A stretch of 64,000 bases of DNA from Trichosphaerium sp. ATCC 40318 (Eukaryota; Protista; Tubulinea): contig JALMLS010000598.1 of assembly GCA_038496445.1 (NCBI GenBank), positions 1-64,000 on the forward strand. The letters are read 5' to 3'. The notes below the pieces were generated by a model. It did not search any database. It worked only from the letters and a program-made list of their open reading frames with translations, and was not told the DNA's origin. This document shows, piece by piece, positions 26,246 to 37,160 of this stretch. Within the stretch, counting starts at the first letter, position 1. Every line of letters begins with the position of its first letter. A program made the position numbers and the translations under genes.

Positions 26246-27166
26246 TTACTTTATTTCAAGCTTTTCAAGCTCTGCAACGATATCAGTAAACTTGTTCTCA
26301 GTAGCTAATTCCAAGAGAGTCTTATCTTCAATCTTAGTAGAAGCATCTGCGCCATTCTTTATCAACTCTTTCACAACATCCAAGTTATTCCTTAACACAG
26401 CAACAAAAAGAGGTGTAGCACCACGTGAACTTGCCTTATTCACATCAGCACCATTAGCAATCAGAACTTTGACTGTCTCCAAGGAGCCAATGTAAGAAGC
26501 CATGAAAACAGCTGTTCCTCCATTTTGATTTTCTGCGTGATTGACTTCAGCACCATTCTTCAACAACAACTCAATAATCTTTGCACGGCCTCCTTGAGCA
26601 GCTACATAAAGAGCATGAGCTCCAGTATTGTTTTTAGCGTTGACATCTGCGCCATTTTTAATGAGCAGCTCTACAACGTCGTAAAAACCTCTCATGCAGG
26701 CGACTGAGAGCGGAGTGCTCCCTTTAATGCTTTTTTGGTTAACGTTTGCTTTTTTCTCCAAAAGAAACTTGATAACATCCAAATGACCGCCTTGCGCTGC
26801 TATAAATAACGCAGTGCATCCCAGAGAAGACGCTTTATCAACTTCTGCTCCACGGTTCACGAGCTCTTCGACAAGCTTCAAATGGCCGTACTGTGACGCG
26901 AAAAATAGTGGAGCGCAGCCTTCTTTGGTTGTTTTGTCAACTTCTGCGCCATGTTCAAGTAATGCAATCGCAACGTCATAAAAACCGTGTGAACAAGATA
27001 CTATCAATGGAGTAAAGCCCACAGGATTCCTTGGATCGAATAAAGTCTGATTGGCATTGCTATCGATTGGACTATCGCTTTTCAAGCACTTGAGGACCTT
27101 TTCAAGGTTATTGTCCTCACAGGCATAGTATAAGGTATTTGCCATATTGAAACTAACAAAACTCAT
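26246..27166 (-). CDS. Intronless ankyrin-repeat protein (~8 repeats; start 27166 or 27145)
   Basis: Repeated GxTPL/AL..A...GH..VV..LL..GA.VN units. Confidence 0.93.
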   Translation of the reverse strand: MSFVSFNMANTLYYACEDNNLEKVLKCLKSDSPIDSNANQTLFDPRNPVGFTPLIVSCSHGFYDVAIALLEHGAEVDKTTKEGCAPLFFASQYGHLKLVEELVNRGAEVDKASSLGCTALFIAAQGGHLDVIKFLLEKKANVNQKSIKGSTPLSVACMRGFYDVVELLIKNGADVNAKNNTGAHALYVAAQGGRAKIIELLLKNGAEVNHAENQNGGTAVFMASYIGSLETVKVLIANGADVNKASSRGATPLFVAVLRNNLDVVKELIKNGADASTKIEDKTLLELATENKFTDIVAELEKLEIK

Positions 27167-27760: not shown

Positions 27761-27977
27761 CTTGTGAAAGGAAGAGTTTCAGCATGTTTAGCAAAGTGTT
27801 TTACCTGAGATAAGAGAGTCGAATTGATATTTGATGATAATAATGACTTAAAATCTTCAAGCAGGACCTCTCTTGTCAGTGGCAAAAATTGTACTGTTTA
27901 TGGGAAGCTGATTTCTGACACATGTGGAAAGTGGCTGACTTAATGAATTTAGCTCTTTCCTTTTTAACCTATTTCAG

Positions 27978-28535
27978 ATGACTTTCTCAAGAACAACGCC
28001 ACTGCTTGCTACGGTATTCGTATTGTTCACTGTTGCACATTGCTATGTTCAATGCAACCGATACGACGATTTAGGGCTTGTATTGAAAGCAAACGATACA
28101 GGGTATCCTAACCTCAATTACGCTATCAATTCTTGCACTGTAAGCAATTTCGAAGTCAGTTACTACAACGCAAAAGGAGAACAGTATTTAACCTTTAATA
28201 TTGGCGTTATTTCTACCAACTGCGAAGAGAGACAAGGTTTTTATGTCATTAACCAAAAAGCAAACAGGACAGACTACTTGGTTATTACCCCTACCAGCGC
28301 TTGGATCAAAAACTGTACTGGTATTTGCAAGAGTAGGCCTTGTTGGAACTTTGACATTGAAAGCGATGCCCCACCAACAGAAGCTCCAGTAGGACCACAC
28401 GAACCAACAACACATGAACCAACAGTTGAACCTGTAGGACCATACGAACCGATAACACAGGAGCCAACAATAGAACCAGCAGTACCATACGAACCAACAA
28501 CACAGGAACTAACAGTAGAGCAAGTAGGACCATGA
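27978..28535 (+). CDS. Intronless secreted Cys-containing protein with Pro/Thr/Glu repeat tail
   Basis: Signal peptide MTFSRTTPLLATVFVLFTVAHC, a 6-Cys globular part, then 15-aa PVGP(H/Y)EPTT(H/Q)EPT(V/I)E repeats. Confidence 0.8.
   Translation: MTFSRTTPLLATVFVLFTVAHCYVQCNRYDDLGLVLKANDTGYPNLNYAINSCTVSNFEVSYYNAKGEQYLTFNIGVISTNCEERQGFYVINQKANRTDYLVITPTSAWIKNCTGICKSRPCWNFDIESDAPPTEAPVGPHEPTTHEPTVEPVGPYEPITQEPTIEPAVPYEPTTQELTVEQVGP
28380..28532 (+). repeat. 45-bp imperfect coding tandem repeat (~3.3 copies)
   Basis: ccagtaggaccacacgaaccaacaacacatgaaccaacagttgaa and variants. Confidence 0.85.
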
Positions 28536-28628
28536 ATATAAGAATGAGCTTTGTAGTACAACACCAACTAAAAATAAAAAGTCCATTTAATTATTATGTA
28601 CAGCTGTTTATTCATATTTATGTAACAG

Positions 28629-30780
28629 CTATGATTCAACAGGTGGTATTGATGATTCTTCTGTAGGTGTAGTCGATATTGACATACTTGATGATTCGCT
28701 TGCAATGTCTTCATTGTTAACTAACAGTGTGTCAACAAAGTTCGAGAAGTGTGTTTTGATGTTTGTTTGTTTTGTTATCCGTACTCGTTATTTCTTGGTG
28801 TGGTTTACCAAAATCATCTTCTACATCCGTTATAGTTAATTGTGCTTCTGTAGCAGTTGTTCCCGACTTTGAAACTCTACAATGGCTGTGAGTAAACAAG
28901 GTTCAATGAGTTTGATATATCGTACCTTCTAGCGCTTCCTTCCAACCTCCAGAATAGTTTGAAGAAGGGATAGGAAAGATACACTAACATCGAACATGCA
29001 ATGACCTCTAGAACAAGAGCAATACCTGCTATAATCAAGTTTATAATAGCTACCATCAAATGTCTGACACGAATATCAGCGTGCTTCTTACTGCAAAAAA
29101 AGTGAGTGAGCTTACAAAGGAATAAAAGTTTGAATTCTATTGGTCTTTTTTTTTACTTACAATAGCCTTTCTCTCAATGGTTCGCCGTTTTCTATTAGTA
29201 ATGTCATGTTATTAAACCAATCTTTAGGGTCAATTTCAAAACGATGACTGTGGTTGTGCTTACCAATCTCCTTTAGAAATTAGGCCCTCTCAACAAAGAA
29301 AAAAAAAGAAGTAAAGACGCACTTCGAGTACAATCTTTAGCCAATTATCAGTCAACAATTTAGCCTCTTGAATCTCTGGCTTTTTCTAAAAAGTTGGTTA
29401 CATATGGGATAGGTACGAGAACAAATCAGTACCGAAAGGCTTATTGCATAGTCCAAATCTTCTAAATCAAGCAACACATCTCGCTCTTCTAAACTATCTC
29501 TTGACTGATCTACTACACGTACAACGTCTAAAAACTCGTGCTGAGTCTCAAAGTACCCTTAAGAAAAACTCATCAGCAAGCTGTTGCTTATGTTTCAATG
29601 GAAATGAGAACATCGACAACAACGTTTACAAAAATTTGCATTCAATCAACAAAGTGTAATTGAACTACAAATTACGTCGACCTGTAGGTCATGTATTGTT
29701 CTCATTTTGTATACATACCTCTTTCAAGTTTTAGAGCAACTGTCTCACGTTCTATACTCAAGTATTCACTATACTAACTCAAGAGGTTAGAAGGATGAAA
29801 TAAGCAATTTTTTTCAGAACTTTTGTTTTTGTTTTTGTCTTTGAATACGTACAAGCGAATCACGGAGAATACCATAAAGTCCTCTGGTTACATCCTCGTG
29901 CTTTGAAAAACTTGCAGATATTTCAAAACTCTTGAACTTGGAATTGACTATTGTAAAGTACTCCAAAGTGACATTGCTTGTAAGTGTTTTTTCATCAACC
30001 TAAACTTGATTTAACCAACACTCGGTTTCAAAAAACCAATAAGAGACAGTGTCAAACTAGCAAAACCAAATTTCTTTAACTCGAAGCACGTTTTTTTTGG
30101 TTTTTTCACGCGAATTTCGATCTTTTTTTAGCGTTTTTTTAGTTTTGACGTAATTGAAGTTTATTCGATTTTGAAAATAACGAGCGTACTTGTTTGCGTA
30201 TATTGGGAAGCTCCTCAAGCATTAGAAATGCTTCATCAAGTATTTCGTGATGCCGCACTTTCCGGTCATCTAATCTATGAACAGTTTCTATGGCTTCGTC
30301 TAGCTTCCTCCGAGCTTCAGCTGAGCGAATAAAAACGTTAATAAAATATGCGAAAACAGGTACTGAAAAGAGTTTAAACTTTATGCTCACCTAGCCTTTC
30401 TTCAATCTGGGGTGTATTATTGAACCCGTCAATGTGTAAAACAGATAGCCCGCGCTCTTCTCCAGCAATTATCGTTAAACCAATGCATTCCTCGAGAAGT
30501 AAATCACGATGTGCTAACAGATTCGACTGATATATTTCTTGTACTACAAGTATAAAGAAGTAGAAAAAGAATATTGCGCTCAACACACCTACAAACAAAG
30601 TTGAAAAGTGACAAACATACGCACGTGGTATAATTAGCCAAGTTAAAAGTATTACATACCTACGCAAGCCCGAAATATGCCAATACGAAGCCTGTGCCTT
30701 ACGTTCTTTTGACTCTTTGTCTTTGCTCTGTTACATCCACAAAGCAATCTACATTGATACAATACCATTTGCAGTACTTA
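28629..30780 (-). CDS. Two-TM membrane protein with an extracytoplasmic NIT (nitrate/nitrite-sensing) domain and short Ser/Thr/acidic tail; 5' end unresolved
   Basis: Spliced: TM1 YVILLTWLIIPRVLSAIFFFYFFILVV; EERGLSVLHI..RLAEARRKLDEAI..LEELPNIRKQVD..LEYFTIVN..SYSEYLSIERETVAL..IDPKDWFNNMTLLIE; TM2 LMVAIINLIIAGIALVLEVIACSMLVYLSY. Tail ends STTPTEESSIPPVES*. Confidence 0.75.
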
Positions 30781-31394
30781 TATTTAATGCGTATATCGTT
30801 GTCACAATTATATTATGCCGTTAATGTTAGTGAACAAAATACAACTCCGGAAAACTGCGTAAGCAAAACGAAGGAAGCACAACATGCTTAAGGGTTCTTA
30901 AACACCTTGCTTCGGGTGGGTGTATTGTGGATAAGTTTAGAGAAAGGCACGTGTTGTTGTAACTGCGTATACTGAACCTACATGCATCAGTAGAGCAAAG
31001 AATGCAGTGAATAGGTCAAAATCTTGAATATAAAAAAAATACCACGTGTTCAGAAAATATGAAGTACCTTTAGCCAAAACCCGCTTTAATGAAAAGGTAT
31101 CCTGCACGTGCTACAAATAAAAAAACTCCGAACCTAAAAAGGTAACACGTTTTCAAAAATTTATACGAAGGCTCCGAGTTTAATAATGGTCGTCACCTAC
31201 TACTAGTACTACTATCCAACTCAAACAGTTTCTAGGGTTATCTTAATACCTAACGAAGGAATCAAATCGCCTTTCCTATACTTGCAGTTATTGGATGAAG
31301 TGTAGTGCTACATACCAGAGGACATTGTACAGCATGTTATGTTGAAAGATAATATTTGTACAAGTTTCGAAAAGAGCAACAATCTGTTGCCTGT

Positions 31395-34300
31395 TTATTG
31401 TTTCGAACATGTGATACTAAGGCTTTTGCCCAATAACCCTGTGTTGCTGGCACTTCCAGGTAGTTTAAAATCAAACACTGAGCCAGTTTCTTCTGTACCA
31501 CTGCATCCTTCAAAAAAGAATTAGTGCCTTTTGCTGTTTTGTACGCTTACCTGTTCCATCCAACACTTGATTTATTGTAACATGTACCTCATTATTAACA
31601 AGTTCCTTAGATAAGTTTGACACTGCAGTAATGTGTTAGCTATTTTGGGACGTTTTTTTTCTTGGCATATTTGTTTCATACATGTTATGGATACGTTGTT
31701 AGTTTCATTGGATAAAATCAATCCACATGGCTTGTCTACCATTATACTAATACCGTTGTATTCTATTTTACCCGGTACCCAAAATACAGCCATTAACTTG
31801 TTCAAGTCTAAGGTGAATGAATATTAACATAACATAAGCTATATTTTGTACTGTGATGATAGACAGCTTGAATGTCAGCATTATTCGCTACTATAATAAC
31901 CTTTGATGTTATGTCATCGACTTGGTACTGTTTAAAGTTCGTATACGTGGTGCTAGGTACAATAATATACTAGTTAAAGTCAGTATCATGAAACAGCCAC
32001 TTGACATTTAATACAAACTCTAAAGCGCTTTGAAGTTCTACTAACCTCATATCCGTTGTACATTTCATCATGAGTAATGTAAAGTCCAAACACCTCTCTT
32101 CAATAAGGTTTAGAGAGAGCAAAATTTGAGGTTGAACAAATATCACGTGCTTTTCAATTGTGCCAGTCTGAATGCCAATGTCGAACCATTTGCCTTCTTT
32201 GATTTCATTGTATAACGTTGTATTAACTTGTTTTCCACTCTTAACACGTGGGAAGATATAACCTGTTTCTCGTTAATGAACTCGTAGTTCTCTTTGTGCT
32301 CATACCAACACCACCATGAAATGTCCATGACATATCGTTATAAACATGTACACCTTGTTTCAAAGCACTTTGACTTGTAGAAGAGTACACATCGCCAGTA
32401 AGTAACCTTTGCGCAACAGATGTAGTGACCTTAAAAAAAGTTTTAACAACTTCGTCTATCCTTGACTGTTGGAAAAAAAGTTGTATACCTGGCTGCAGTC
32501 TTCACATTTAATATCACTACCCAAAGCAACATACTCAACATCAAAAAAGAACCACACCTTCTTTACAGAAAGTTTTTGCCTTGATGAAGTGAAATCCATA
32601 GCAGCTATTCCATACATACCATCTGAAACGCCACCAACATTTGTGCTTTCCCCAAAAGCATGATTACTTGTAGTACAATCTATGATCTATTTTAGCTTGT
32701 TTTGGGGGTTTGAAGTCTTTAAAGTGCTGTCACGTGCCTAGTGGTATCCCATTTGTTTTAGCTGTTACACCTGGTATTTTATCCCAGTCCCATGTAGGGA
32801 AGATATCAACATAATCATTACCACTTATATACAGATAATTTGCACCGTCAGAAAAATGAGCTGATTTCTTGCCTTCAGTGTTTACGCATTCAGCGCCTTT
32901 TAGCCCTTTAGCGTTCATTTTTACGCTATAAAAAAGTGTTAAAGTAAGATTGAAAGATTGTAGTTTGTTATTATTGAGTACCTTGTACGGTACGTTGGTC
33001 TTGAGTGAACCATAAAATCAGCAAACCAATACATTTTGTTTCCTTTTAAAGGTGATCCACCTTCGTTCAAACGCTCCGAATACTCCATCCATTCATCAGT
33101 TCTAACCCCATAGTCGGCCACTGAAGATACTAATTGAGGGTCGAAACACTATATTGTTCACGTTAGCATCATACACACAAAATACATCACAAACCTTCAT
33201 ATCAGATCTTGGGAAATTGTACTTGCTAGCAAATTTACAAGCAGCACCTTGGCGCCTTGTATTCATTCTTCCTCTAACGGCAATATCCCATGTTAAAGAC
33301 GGATAGTTAATAGCCCTATTTACAGTCTCAGTCGTAACGACTAGTAGCTCACTTCGAACGCACCATTGTTGACCATCTAAAATATATGAAGAAAAAACAT
33401 CCAAGTGCTCTTTGGATACAGCATACGTAGTGTTGAACGTGTAGTATAGGAAAAACAATACCTTGATATTTTTAGTTGTATGTTTTAGAAAAAACTTACT
33501 TGTTGCGTGTAGTATGCTCCATAGGCACCAGTGTATAATTGGAAACCATGTTGAAAAAACGAGTTGTCAACCTAGAGTTTGTTGTCAGAAAACAGACCCT
33601 TGCTCTTTTTGGTAGCCCTTCGAACGTACCATTATCCCTCCAGTAGCCGAACCCGACAAGGGAGCTTGGGATATACCCTTTGTAATATTATCTACAGCAG
33701 AGGCGATGATATCATTATTTTTCTACTTTGTTGTAAATGCAACTTAAAAAAAATCTATTTTTTGTACTTGTAGAATCCCATTACTTAGACTAAGCATTGA
33801 TAACCATTCATAGTTTGCGCCAGTTTCTCCTTTTGCTCTGCGTCTTGACAACACAGCTAAAAGTATGTGTTACGCTCACGCAAGACTAACTAGCACGTGC
33901 CTGAAGATTTAGAAATTTGTTCCGGAGTTAGTTCTTCAGGGAGGAGGTTGACGACAATTGCAAGATCCACAGGCATTTGAATATCATTCCACCACCAGTT
34001 GGGGTTTTGTAAATCGGAATCGAGCCAAAAATCAAGTGCTAGCAATATCTAGAGAGTTGGAATAAAAAAACTAACAATGCAAAAAAAATGAACTCTGAAA
34101 CATACTGACTTCAACAAAGTTGTGTTTCCATGTAGTGACGAAGAAGGCGCATAGTATGATAAAGACATATCTCTAAGCCTTGGGTTCAAATGCTCAGCCG
34201 CAAGCCATACCTCCAAATTCTTGTCCGTGTAGGCTTTCATAAAAATCAAAGAGCGACTGGAAAAAAAAAAAAAGTTGTCACGTTTTACATCACGTGACAC

Positions 34301-34992: not shown

Positions 34993-37160
34993 TTATTGAC
35001 AACTACTTAAGTTGGCAAAGCCAACCCTTCCGTTAATGCGATCGTGTTCAATGTAAAAGTTTTGCATGAATGTATCCCCAAGTACAGCACCAACACCTAT
35101 CGCTGATCCTACACCAAAGCAATATTCTCCTTGTACAGCTATCCAGTAGCTAAATATTAAAAGGTTAGACTCTAAAGCTACAAAAAAAGAATGCAATGCT
35201 TTTTCTTTTCACGTGCACAAGAAAAGAACAAAAGTTCAAACAACCTTTCGGTTAGCTCAAAAAGCAGAACAAACTTGGCGCGTCTTGGAACAAAAGAATA
35301 AATTGGAGGTAAAATTTCTTGAAGGTGTTCAAGGCACGTGAAGAAAGTATTGTAACAGGGAAAGACTTCCACAAAAATTACTTTTTTTGTACGTACCTTG
35401 TAGGTGGAACTGTAAGTTTGAATGTTCCAGCTCCGTTCTATTTATTAGACATTAGACAACTGTTAAAACGGTGTTGTATTATCTCCGTACCTCATGAGGA
35501 AATTCAAATTCCAAGTCAGGGAACAACTTTAAAGAGTTTCCCATTGTTGAGCTTGAAATACATGTTCCCTGGGATCCAAAAATAGAGTTTGGTCCTGACA
35601 TTCCTGGAAGAGAAGCATAATCGTGCTGGAACGCAGAAACAAGTTGTGACCATGCTATTGTTTTGAATGTCAGTTAGAAACCGTTTAGATGAATAGAAGA
35701 TAACTAAAGTACCGTAAGGATTGAGAAGAATTACAGAAGTTCCAGAGTCAATAAATGCGCCAATGACATCATTTGTTGTCCAGTATAAGTACGAAGGTAC
35801 TAAAAGAATTGTGATTAATAAACAACCACGTTTACTAGTTAAATAAAATAGTCTAGTATCCGAAGCGAGTGCGCGTACCACCAATTGATTTACTGTTGAG
35901 TTGGACATCAAGCAAATGCATATTGTACCTAAACATTCTGTGATTAAAAAAACCTTGAAATATATTTAAAGGTGTCATGACACGCCTACCATCTCTTCAT
36001 AGTAACTTTGGTGTAAAGCATTTCTCCAGTGTATCGAGAAGTATTTGAGTATCCCAAATCAAGTCTACCACCATTTGAAGGCGTCAAGCAGACACCAAAC
36101 CTATTCAAACAAGCAGTTAACTTACGTTTTTAGACTTAAAAAAAACCACTTACAAATCTGGTAAACCCTTTGATTTTGATATGTCATCGTAAATAGGAGT
36201 AGTACACGTTGGATTACATGCGTTAAACTCATGAGCAAATCCCTAAAGTTGATAAATACTCAAGATTCTATGAAAAAGAAAAACCCTTGTATCGTACAAT
36301 AATACCATCTTGTGGCTCATCAAAAAAGCCACCAGCAGGTACTGAATCATCAACAAGCATGAAAGAATGATTAGCAACACATATTCCTTCGATACAGACA
36401 GTATCGCTTCCCAAAGAACCAGAAATAGCTGAACTGCCACCACCTTTAAAAAAAAGTCAAAACAATCTCACCACGCTAAATGAACGCACCGTATGTAATG
36501 TAGTAACCACAAGAAGCATCAAGTGTACGTTCAGGTTCACCAAATACACATTTCCTAGTGCTCTAAGCACATAAACGTTAGACAATACAAAAAACAACAA
36601 AGGTACCTCAAAGAATCCCACTGGAGAACATTTTTGGCATGTTGAGCTTCCATAAGCTTTATGACATTAGATTATAAAAACAACAAGAAAAACCCAACAA
36701 CGCTGAAGTAAAGTCATACCAACAGTCTTGAATGTCGATGAAGTCTCTGAAAATGGTTTTCCTTGACCGCACGTGGTACACCTTCTAAATGTCAAAACTG
36801 TTTCGTCAAGCACGTGGAACGTACCTAGATGAAGGGATACCTAAGTTTGCTGATCCTGTATCGAACTATAGTGAGGTTTTAGTGATAAATAAACATGAAA
36901 CGCTAGTTGAGTGCTCTTACCAAGACGTTAAAGTGTTGTGCAGGTGTTCCAATAGTAACGTCCATGTAATAAGAACCAAGAGTCACAACGCCACCAGAAA
37001 GCGGTATGGAGTTACCGACTTGATTTTTACCATCGTGATACTTGTTCAAGAAGCCAGAAGGCGCTTGATTATGATGTTTATGATCTTTACGACCCAAGTG
37101 AACAGAAAAGGCTAAAGAAGCCGTAAGAACCAATATTAGAGCGACCACGCGTGTCATCAT
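34993..37160 (-). CDS. Secreted pepsin-family (A1) aspartic protease
   Basis: Signal peptide, YYMDVTIGTPAQHFNVLFDTGSANL, AFIDSGTS, AVLGDTFMQNFYIEHDRINGRVGFA. Confidence 0.95.

Follow-up and report, generated by a model that had tools for sequence, protein, structure and literature searches.

The analysed stretch of DNA (hereafter the window) is 64,000 nt long and carries, on its minus strand, a gene for a protein with a NIT domain between two transmembrane segments. By reading and translation, the gene has 11 coding exons that run from an ATG at 30768 to a TAG at 28631-28629 (Table 1). The 1287-nt coding sequence specifies 428 amino acids plus the stop, all ten introns are bounded by GT and AG, and an in-frame stop lies three codons 5' of the ATG. 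Exons are short, introns measure 47-190 nt and the window has a G+C content of ~37%. The published draft genome of Trichosphaerium sp. has 37.7% G+C, a mean intron length of 75 bp and a mean exon length of 154 bp (PMC10521059). The G+C, exon and intron figures agree with those published. In composition and gene structure, the window is typical of a protist genome.

Table 1. Coordinates of the NIT gene and of its features in the window. P0001 is the related protein described in the text; X1-X4 are public sequencing runs.
Feature	Coordinates	Strand	Content or evidence
Whole transcript unit	28591..30800	-	Spliced cDNA contigs X1-X4; 5' ends ~30738-30800, 3' end ~28591-28593
Exon 1	30660..30768	-	ATG; basic cytosolic N-terminus; 29/36 residues as in the P0001 N-terminus
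Cys cluster CRLLCGC, exon 1	30753..30733	-	
Start of TM1, exon 1	30684..30660	-	Arg at 30672..30670
Exon 2	30391..30588	-	Remainder of TM1 and first NIT helix; 83% identical to P0001 residues 38-102
Remainder of TM1, exon 2	30586..30542	-	
EERGLS motif, first NIT helix, exon 2	30460..30443	-	
Sequon NNT, exon 2	30421..30413	-	
cDNA joints flanking exon 2	30586->30658 and 30320->30391	-	
Exon 3	30190..30320	-	NIT domain; cDNA joints; 36/42 residues as in P0001 105-146
Exon 4	29853..29999	-	NIT domain; contains the optional in-frame 51-nt intron 29961..29911
Sequon NVT, exon 4	29975..29967	-	
Exon 5	29719..29773	-	Motif of the second NIT half; 18/18 residues as in P0001 196-213; joint 29556->29718
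SIERET motif, exon 5	29758..29741	-	
Exon 6	29433..29557	-	NIT domain; cDNA and comparison with P0001
Exon 7	29323..29385	-	NIT domain; cDNA and comparison with P0001
Exon 8	29161..29270	-	Last NIT helix; cDNA and comparison with P0001
WFNNMT motif, last NIT helix, exon 8	29219..29202	-	
Sequons of exon 8	NHS 29255..29247; NMT 29210..29202	-	
Exon 9	28926..29090	-	TM2 and juxtamembrane segment; 39/53 residues as in P0001; Kyte-Doolittle peak
TM2, exon 9	29059..28973	-	Buried Glu at 29008..29006
Conserved juxtamembrane segment YLSYPFFKLFWRLEG, exon 9	28981..28937	-	
Exon 10	28785..28876	-	Start of the cytosolic tail, acidic Thr-rich stretch; joints 28876->28926 and 28720->28785
RRVS site	Spans the exon 9/10 junction	-	
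Exon 11	28629..28720	-	End of the Ser/Thr/acidic tail; TAG 28631..28629
AATAAA polyadenylation signal	28612..28607	-	14-16 nt ahead of the cDNA 3' ends

Several other genes surround this locus. Upstream, at ~31400-34000 on the minus strand, lies a multi-exon gene for a polysaccharide lyase of family 8, which is covered by spliced cDNA contigs and of which a single exon ORF (32730-32918) matches Pfam Lyase_8 on its own (E 1.9e-18). As a largely bacterial-type enzyme with introns in an amoeba, this lyase is a candidate for an old gene transfer. Farther upstream, at 34993-35196 on the minus strand, an exon-sized ORF resembles the C-terminal end of eukaryotic aspartyl proteases, with a match to Pfam Asp that is barely over the cut-off (E 1e-4). 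On the other side, an intronless ORF of 185 amino acids occupies 27978-28535 on the plus strand and converges on the NIT gene. A cDNA contig over it begins at 27976 with a SMART adapter, and its product, for which no Pfam match was found, has a signal-peptide-like start, several cysteines and a C-terminal run of Pro/Thr/Glu-rich repeats. Beyond it, at 26246-27166 on the minus strand, an ORF of 306 amino acids consists almost entirely of ankyrin repeats (Ank_2, E 5e-72).

The NIT locus is present as spliced contigs in four public runs (X1-X4) from two studies, the second being represented by X1. The SMART cDNA adapter sequence found at contig ends identifies runs X2-X4 as cDNA. The spliced cDNA contigs contain a joint for nine of the ten introns. 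Intron 4 (29852..29774), which contains a simple repeat and was skipped in joint calling, is supported indirectly, by the length of a 1252-nt contig from X2 and by an unbroken match to P0001 across the junction. These data correct one detail of an earlier reading of the locus from sequence alone (the sequence-only reading), which had put the last splice donor at an earlier GGTAAAC. The actual donor is 28785|28784 (junction 28785|28720), a shift that changes a few residues of the tail and leaves the stop unaffected. The contigs of X1, whose organism or sample is differently labelled, match the gene in the window except at three sites (29024-29025 and 30506), so that a near-identical strain expresses the gene in an independent data set.

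Both ends of the transcript could be placed. At the 5' end, the 1252-nt contig of X2 extends to 30800 and a SMART 5' adapter lies at 30738 in X4, while at the 3' end cDNA contigs stop at 28591 and 28593, ~40 nt past the stop codon. The contig ends, the polyadenylation signal and the 5' adapter are thus in agreement with the stop at 28629 and with the 5' end given by the sequence-only reading. No cDNA depth was found at 30947-31328, which indicates that the NIT gene is distinct from the upstream polysaccharide lyase gene. In none of the cDNA contigs of the four runs did the transcript continue into a catalytic domain.

In addition to the main transcript, we found three splice variants, all in frame and all at low depth. 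A 51-nt intron inside exon 4 (29911-29961, minus strand; runs X2 and X3) removes 17 amino acids of the first helical bundle, and a 54-nt intron inside exon 2 (30491-30544, minus strand; X2) removes 18 amino acids of helix 1, or about five helical turns, just past TM1. In the third, an alternative acceptor at 30544 (event 30544-30659, minus strand; X4) joins exon 1 to 30543, so that most of TM1 is lost. The P0001 transcript retains all three of these segments. The variants could be genuine isoforms or splicing noise, which would escape decay since the reading frame is preserved.

The product of this intact and expressed gene of a Trichosphaerium-like marine amoeba is a hairpin (two-pass) membrane glycoprotein of 428 amino acids without an enzyme domain. 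Two hydrophobic segments bracket the NIT domain, the first of them (TM1) crossing the exon 1/2 junction. From the N-terminus, the protein consists of a short basic region, TM1, a NIT ectodomain of ~270 amino acids, TM2, a juxtamembrane segment and a tail of ~60 amino acids, and P0001 has the same layout. The arrangement proposed earlier from the sequence, a NIT domain between two transmembrane segments followed only by a short tail rich in Ser, Thr and acidic residues, is thus borne out by the cDNA, by the hydrophobic segments and by P0001. The motifs named at that time, EERGLS, SIERET and a terminal WFxxxT helix, are likewise present at their positions on translation, the last as WFNNMT.

Within this layout, the first 28 residues include eight Lys or Arg, three Cys and no acidic residue; the cysteines are possible candidates for palmitoylation. 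The loop between the two membrane segments carries four N-x-S/T sequons, the positions of which are all kept in P0001. Their conservation fits a loop that lies on the lumenal or extracellular side in the eukaryotic secretory pathway. The EERG (from 30460) and IERE (from 29755) motifs are present in both proteins, ~121 residues apart, and they compare with those of NasR by motif and spacing only. Past TM2 comes a juxtamembrane segment of 15 residues that differs from P0001 at one position (Arg for Lys), and then a tail with an RRxS site (RKxS in P0001) followed by acidic Ser/Thr clusters.

The comparisons with P0001 derive from a HMMER search of 1.84 billion representative proteins with exon 2, which returned one strong match (83% identity, E 6e-27). 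P0001, a complete ORF of 429 amino acids, comes from Trichosphaerium sp. ATCC 40318 (Amoebozoa; transcriptome MMETSP0405). All exons of the NIT gene align with it in order, with identity at 312 of 422 exon residues (74%), and, judged by its sequence, it is the orthologue from a Trichosphaerium species other than that of the window. Over the NIT exons and TM2, identity per exon ranges from 63 to 100% (median ~80%), and the exon that carries the second E-R motif is fully identical, whereas the tail is ~46-48% identical, with conserved islands. This uneven pattern, with conserved NIT exons and a less conserved tail, suggests purifying selection on the sensor and argues against a decaying remnant.

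Membership in the NIT family was established on P0001, which here stands in for the joined protein of the window. P0001 scores 75 bits with the Pfam NIT profile (PF08376; cut-off 24.9, E 1.5e-20), with its residues 79-308 aligned to profile positions 7-230 of 239. Single exons of the window gave no Pfam NIT match because they are too short. No second Pfam domain was found in P0001, and a C-terminal class III cyclase domain (PF00211) past TM2 is absent according to the Pfam search of P0001, the transcript ends and the position of the convergent neighbour. The ten clusters structurally closest to the ESM Atlas model of P0001 (pTM 0.62, pLDDT 0.70) all consist of NIT receptors or of their kinase relatives, with TM scores by query of 0.64-0.72. 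These clusters comprise chemoreceptors, histidine kinases, GGDEF proteins, NIT-ANTAR proteins, NIT-guanylate cyclases of molluscs and a bacterial NIT-only cluster. On the evidence of these neighbours, the modelled fold is predicted to be the NIT fold, all-alpha with two four-helix bundles. The family assignment made in the sequence-only reading therefore stands in both respects, by profile through a protein 74% identical to that of the window and by structural match through its model. AlphaFold2 run without an alignment gave eight ectodomain helices, at a quality too low for use (pLDDT 49 for the whole protein and 41 for the ectodomain), and the structural evidence is therefore that of the Atlas model alone.

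Beyond the orthologue, the sequence is isolated. Word-based searches of 5.8 billion proteins with the whole of P0001 and with its NIT region, at E values up to 10, returned P0001 itself only. Nothing matched in NCBIfam, a search of the PDB by sequence gave no relevant match, an Atlas search with exon 2 as the sole query returned nothing useful, and BLASTP between the two NIT halves detected no internal repeat. The window holds no paralogue of the gene within its length. Pattern scans, which catch close relatives only, found no relative in 185,579 prokaryotic species genomes or in metagenome contigs, and tblastn found none in plasmids. A recent bacterial donor is thus not visible in these collections. 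The genus Trichosphaerium has been reported to be rich in transferred genes (PMC10521059), and for the NIT gene an old transfer from bacteria is, at the level of sequence comparison, neither shown nor excluded.

How does this protein compare with NIT proteins of known architecture? Bacterial NIT receptors such as NasR (NIT-ANTAR) and the NIT chemoreceptors of Pectobacterium atrosepticum and Dickeya dadantii share with it the PF08376 domain, the fold of two four-helix bundles and, as far as motif and spacing can tell, the E-R residues of the putative pocket; in sequence, the similarity is at the profile level only. Isolated domains of the bacterial receptors have been shown to bind nitrate and nitrite, and their output domains are of the ANTAR, HAMP-MCPsignal, kinase or GGDEF type, none of which the amoeba protein has. 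Among eukaryotes, the best-described case is that of the animal NIT-guanylate cyclases, which have the same TM-NIT-TM sensor module and, where the bundles meet, conserved arginines (Moroz et al. 2020, PMC7400543). The mollusc NIT-cyclase cluster matches the Atlas model of P0001 with a TM score of 0.71. These animal proteins continue into a C-terminal Guanylate_cyc domain (in part with HNOBA), whereas the amoeba protein ends ~60 amino acids past TM2.

The amoeba protein is not the only eukaryotic NIT protein to lack a cyclase, and the earlier view that eukaryotic NIT domains are fused to cyclases proved incomplete. The alga Pelagomonas calceolata has a published 'external' NIT protein in which the domain lies between two TM helices with no other domain (Guerin et al. 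2022, PMC9481584). Its proposed role is the external sensing of nitrate or nitrite, its expression rises in waters poor in nitrate, and homologues of this type have been reported only in pelagophytes, dictyochophytes and one cryptophyte (PMC9481584). The two proteins are alike in being eukaryotic and in having a TM-NIT-TM arrangement with nothing further, a likeness of described architecture. Their organisms differ widely, Pelagomonas being a photosynthetic, nitrate-assimilating stramenopile and Trichosphaerium a phagotrophic amoebozoan. The ESM Atlas also contains NIT-only clusters, known by automatic names only, in which proteins of similar length have NIT as their sole common domain. A bacterial cluster (~376 amino acids, 273 members, HAMP in 26%) gives the best two-way structural match to P0001 (TM 0.72/0.81), and a eukaryotic, mostly arthropod cluster (~386 amino acids, 64 members) gives the best match by language-model features (0.92). 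Kinship of P0001 with these clusters beyond the shared family is a lead. A 2023 paper by Monteagudo-Cascales et al. announces NIT domains in eukaryotes in its title. In the literature that we searched, we found no report of a NIT domain in Amoebozoa.

What might such a protein do? In NasR, residues E175/R176 of helix 5 form the proposed nitrate pocket (PMC7496416), animal NIT domains have two conserved arginines at the bundle interface (PMC7400543), and isolated NIT domains from two enterobacterial chemoreceptors bind nitrate and nitrite with KD values of 2-47 uM (PMC12358799). The window protein and P0001 have each retained the two E-R dyads and the W-F helix at the end of the domain. The explanation that we favour as probable is that of a hairpin NIT membrane glycoprotein that senses an oxyanion and whose output passes through the juxtamembrane segment and tail or through a partner. 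The ligand, a small oxyanion and most probably nitrite or nitrate, would bind between the two bundles at the EERG and IERE dyads, as in bacterial NIT receptors. Because the last NIT helix continues directly into TM2, displacement of this helix would shift the juxtamembrane segment. Such a shift may alter phosphorylation of the RRxS site and of the acidic tail, or the binding of a separate, signal-carrying partner, with the association of which the buried Glu in TM2 and the Arg in TM1 could help. As the protein has no enzyme of its own, its output would have to lie in a partner protein or in a modification of the juxtamembrane segment and tail. The conserved basophilic-kinase motif and the acidic Ser/Thr clusters are compatible with signalling by tail phosphorylation, as far as motifs that are short and common can indicate. 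Here we infer ligand, cellular location (surface or phagosome) and output.

Other explanations of the same protein have to be weighed against this one. The NIT fold may have been put to another use, for another ligand or in a membrane glycoprotein with a trafficking or structural role, for example in phagosomes. The isolation of the sequence is in keeping with such a change of use, since P0001 alone was recovered among the 5.8 billion proteins and no relative was detected in the prokaryotic genomes, metagenome contigs and plasmids, within the reach of those searches. Acidic Ser/Thr clusters, moreover, also serve as sorting signals. However, the dyads and the terminal W-F helix, which are the most conserved positions of NIT domains, have been kept in two species, and the exon with the second dyad has not diverged between them at all. 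We consider re-use of the fold unlikely. Slightly less probable in our judgement is a co-receptor or decoy, which would form an intramembrane pair with a NIT-cyclase, a NIT-kinase or an unrelated catalytic receptor and tune or block it. It would account for a NIT protein that, by its cDNA and by the Pfam search of P0001, has no output domain of its own, and the conserved buried Glu of TM2 and the Arg of TM1 are the kind of residue that drives intramembrane pairing. Bacterial four-helix-bundle sensors function as dimers, which also fits pairing, but the window offers no NIT paralogue as a candidate partner.

NIT domains precede an output domain in most bacteria and animals, which raises the question of whether the gene has lost the catalytic exons of a former NIT-enzyme receptor and is now decaying, or whether the gene model is truncated. 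The sequence-only reading had allowed for onward splicing of the transcripts to a catalytic domain. No such splicing occurs in these data, as the 3' ends at 28591-28593 lie past the AATAAA, the neighbour on the plus strand is convergent and P0001 is complete. The ORF of 428 or 429 amino acids has stayed intact in two species whose proteins are 74% identical, and constraint on the domain is far above that on the tail; the gene is expressed in two studies, and its ends are set by the 5' adapter, the polyadenylation signal and the contig ends. A remnant or a truncated model is thus already largely refuted, and we regard either as highly improbable. Oxyanion sensing by an enzyme-less hairpin protein remains our preferred reading.

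Few bacterial sensor modules recur in eukaryotes, and NIT is one of them. The locus described here is a well-supported case from Amoebozoa, with a gene model verified by cDNA and conserved in two species. It adds a further lineage to the published enzyme-less TM-NIT-TM kind and does not constitute a new class. Taken together, the amoeba protein and that of Pelagomonas indicate that this enzyme-less form recurs in distant eukaryotes, so that a culturable amoeba could serve to ask how a receptor of this form signals. A bolder and rather doubtful extension is that a small family of enzyme-less NIT receptors may serve a phagotroph as chemosensors for nitrite or nitrate from bacterial prey or from nitrogen-rich microhabitats, signalling by a phosphorylated tail or an intramembrane partner. 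If true, this would be a mode of NIT signalling not yet described, one that operates without a fused enzyme.
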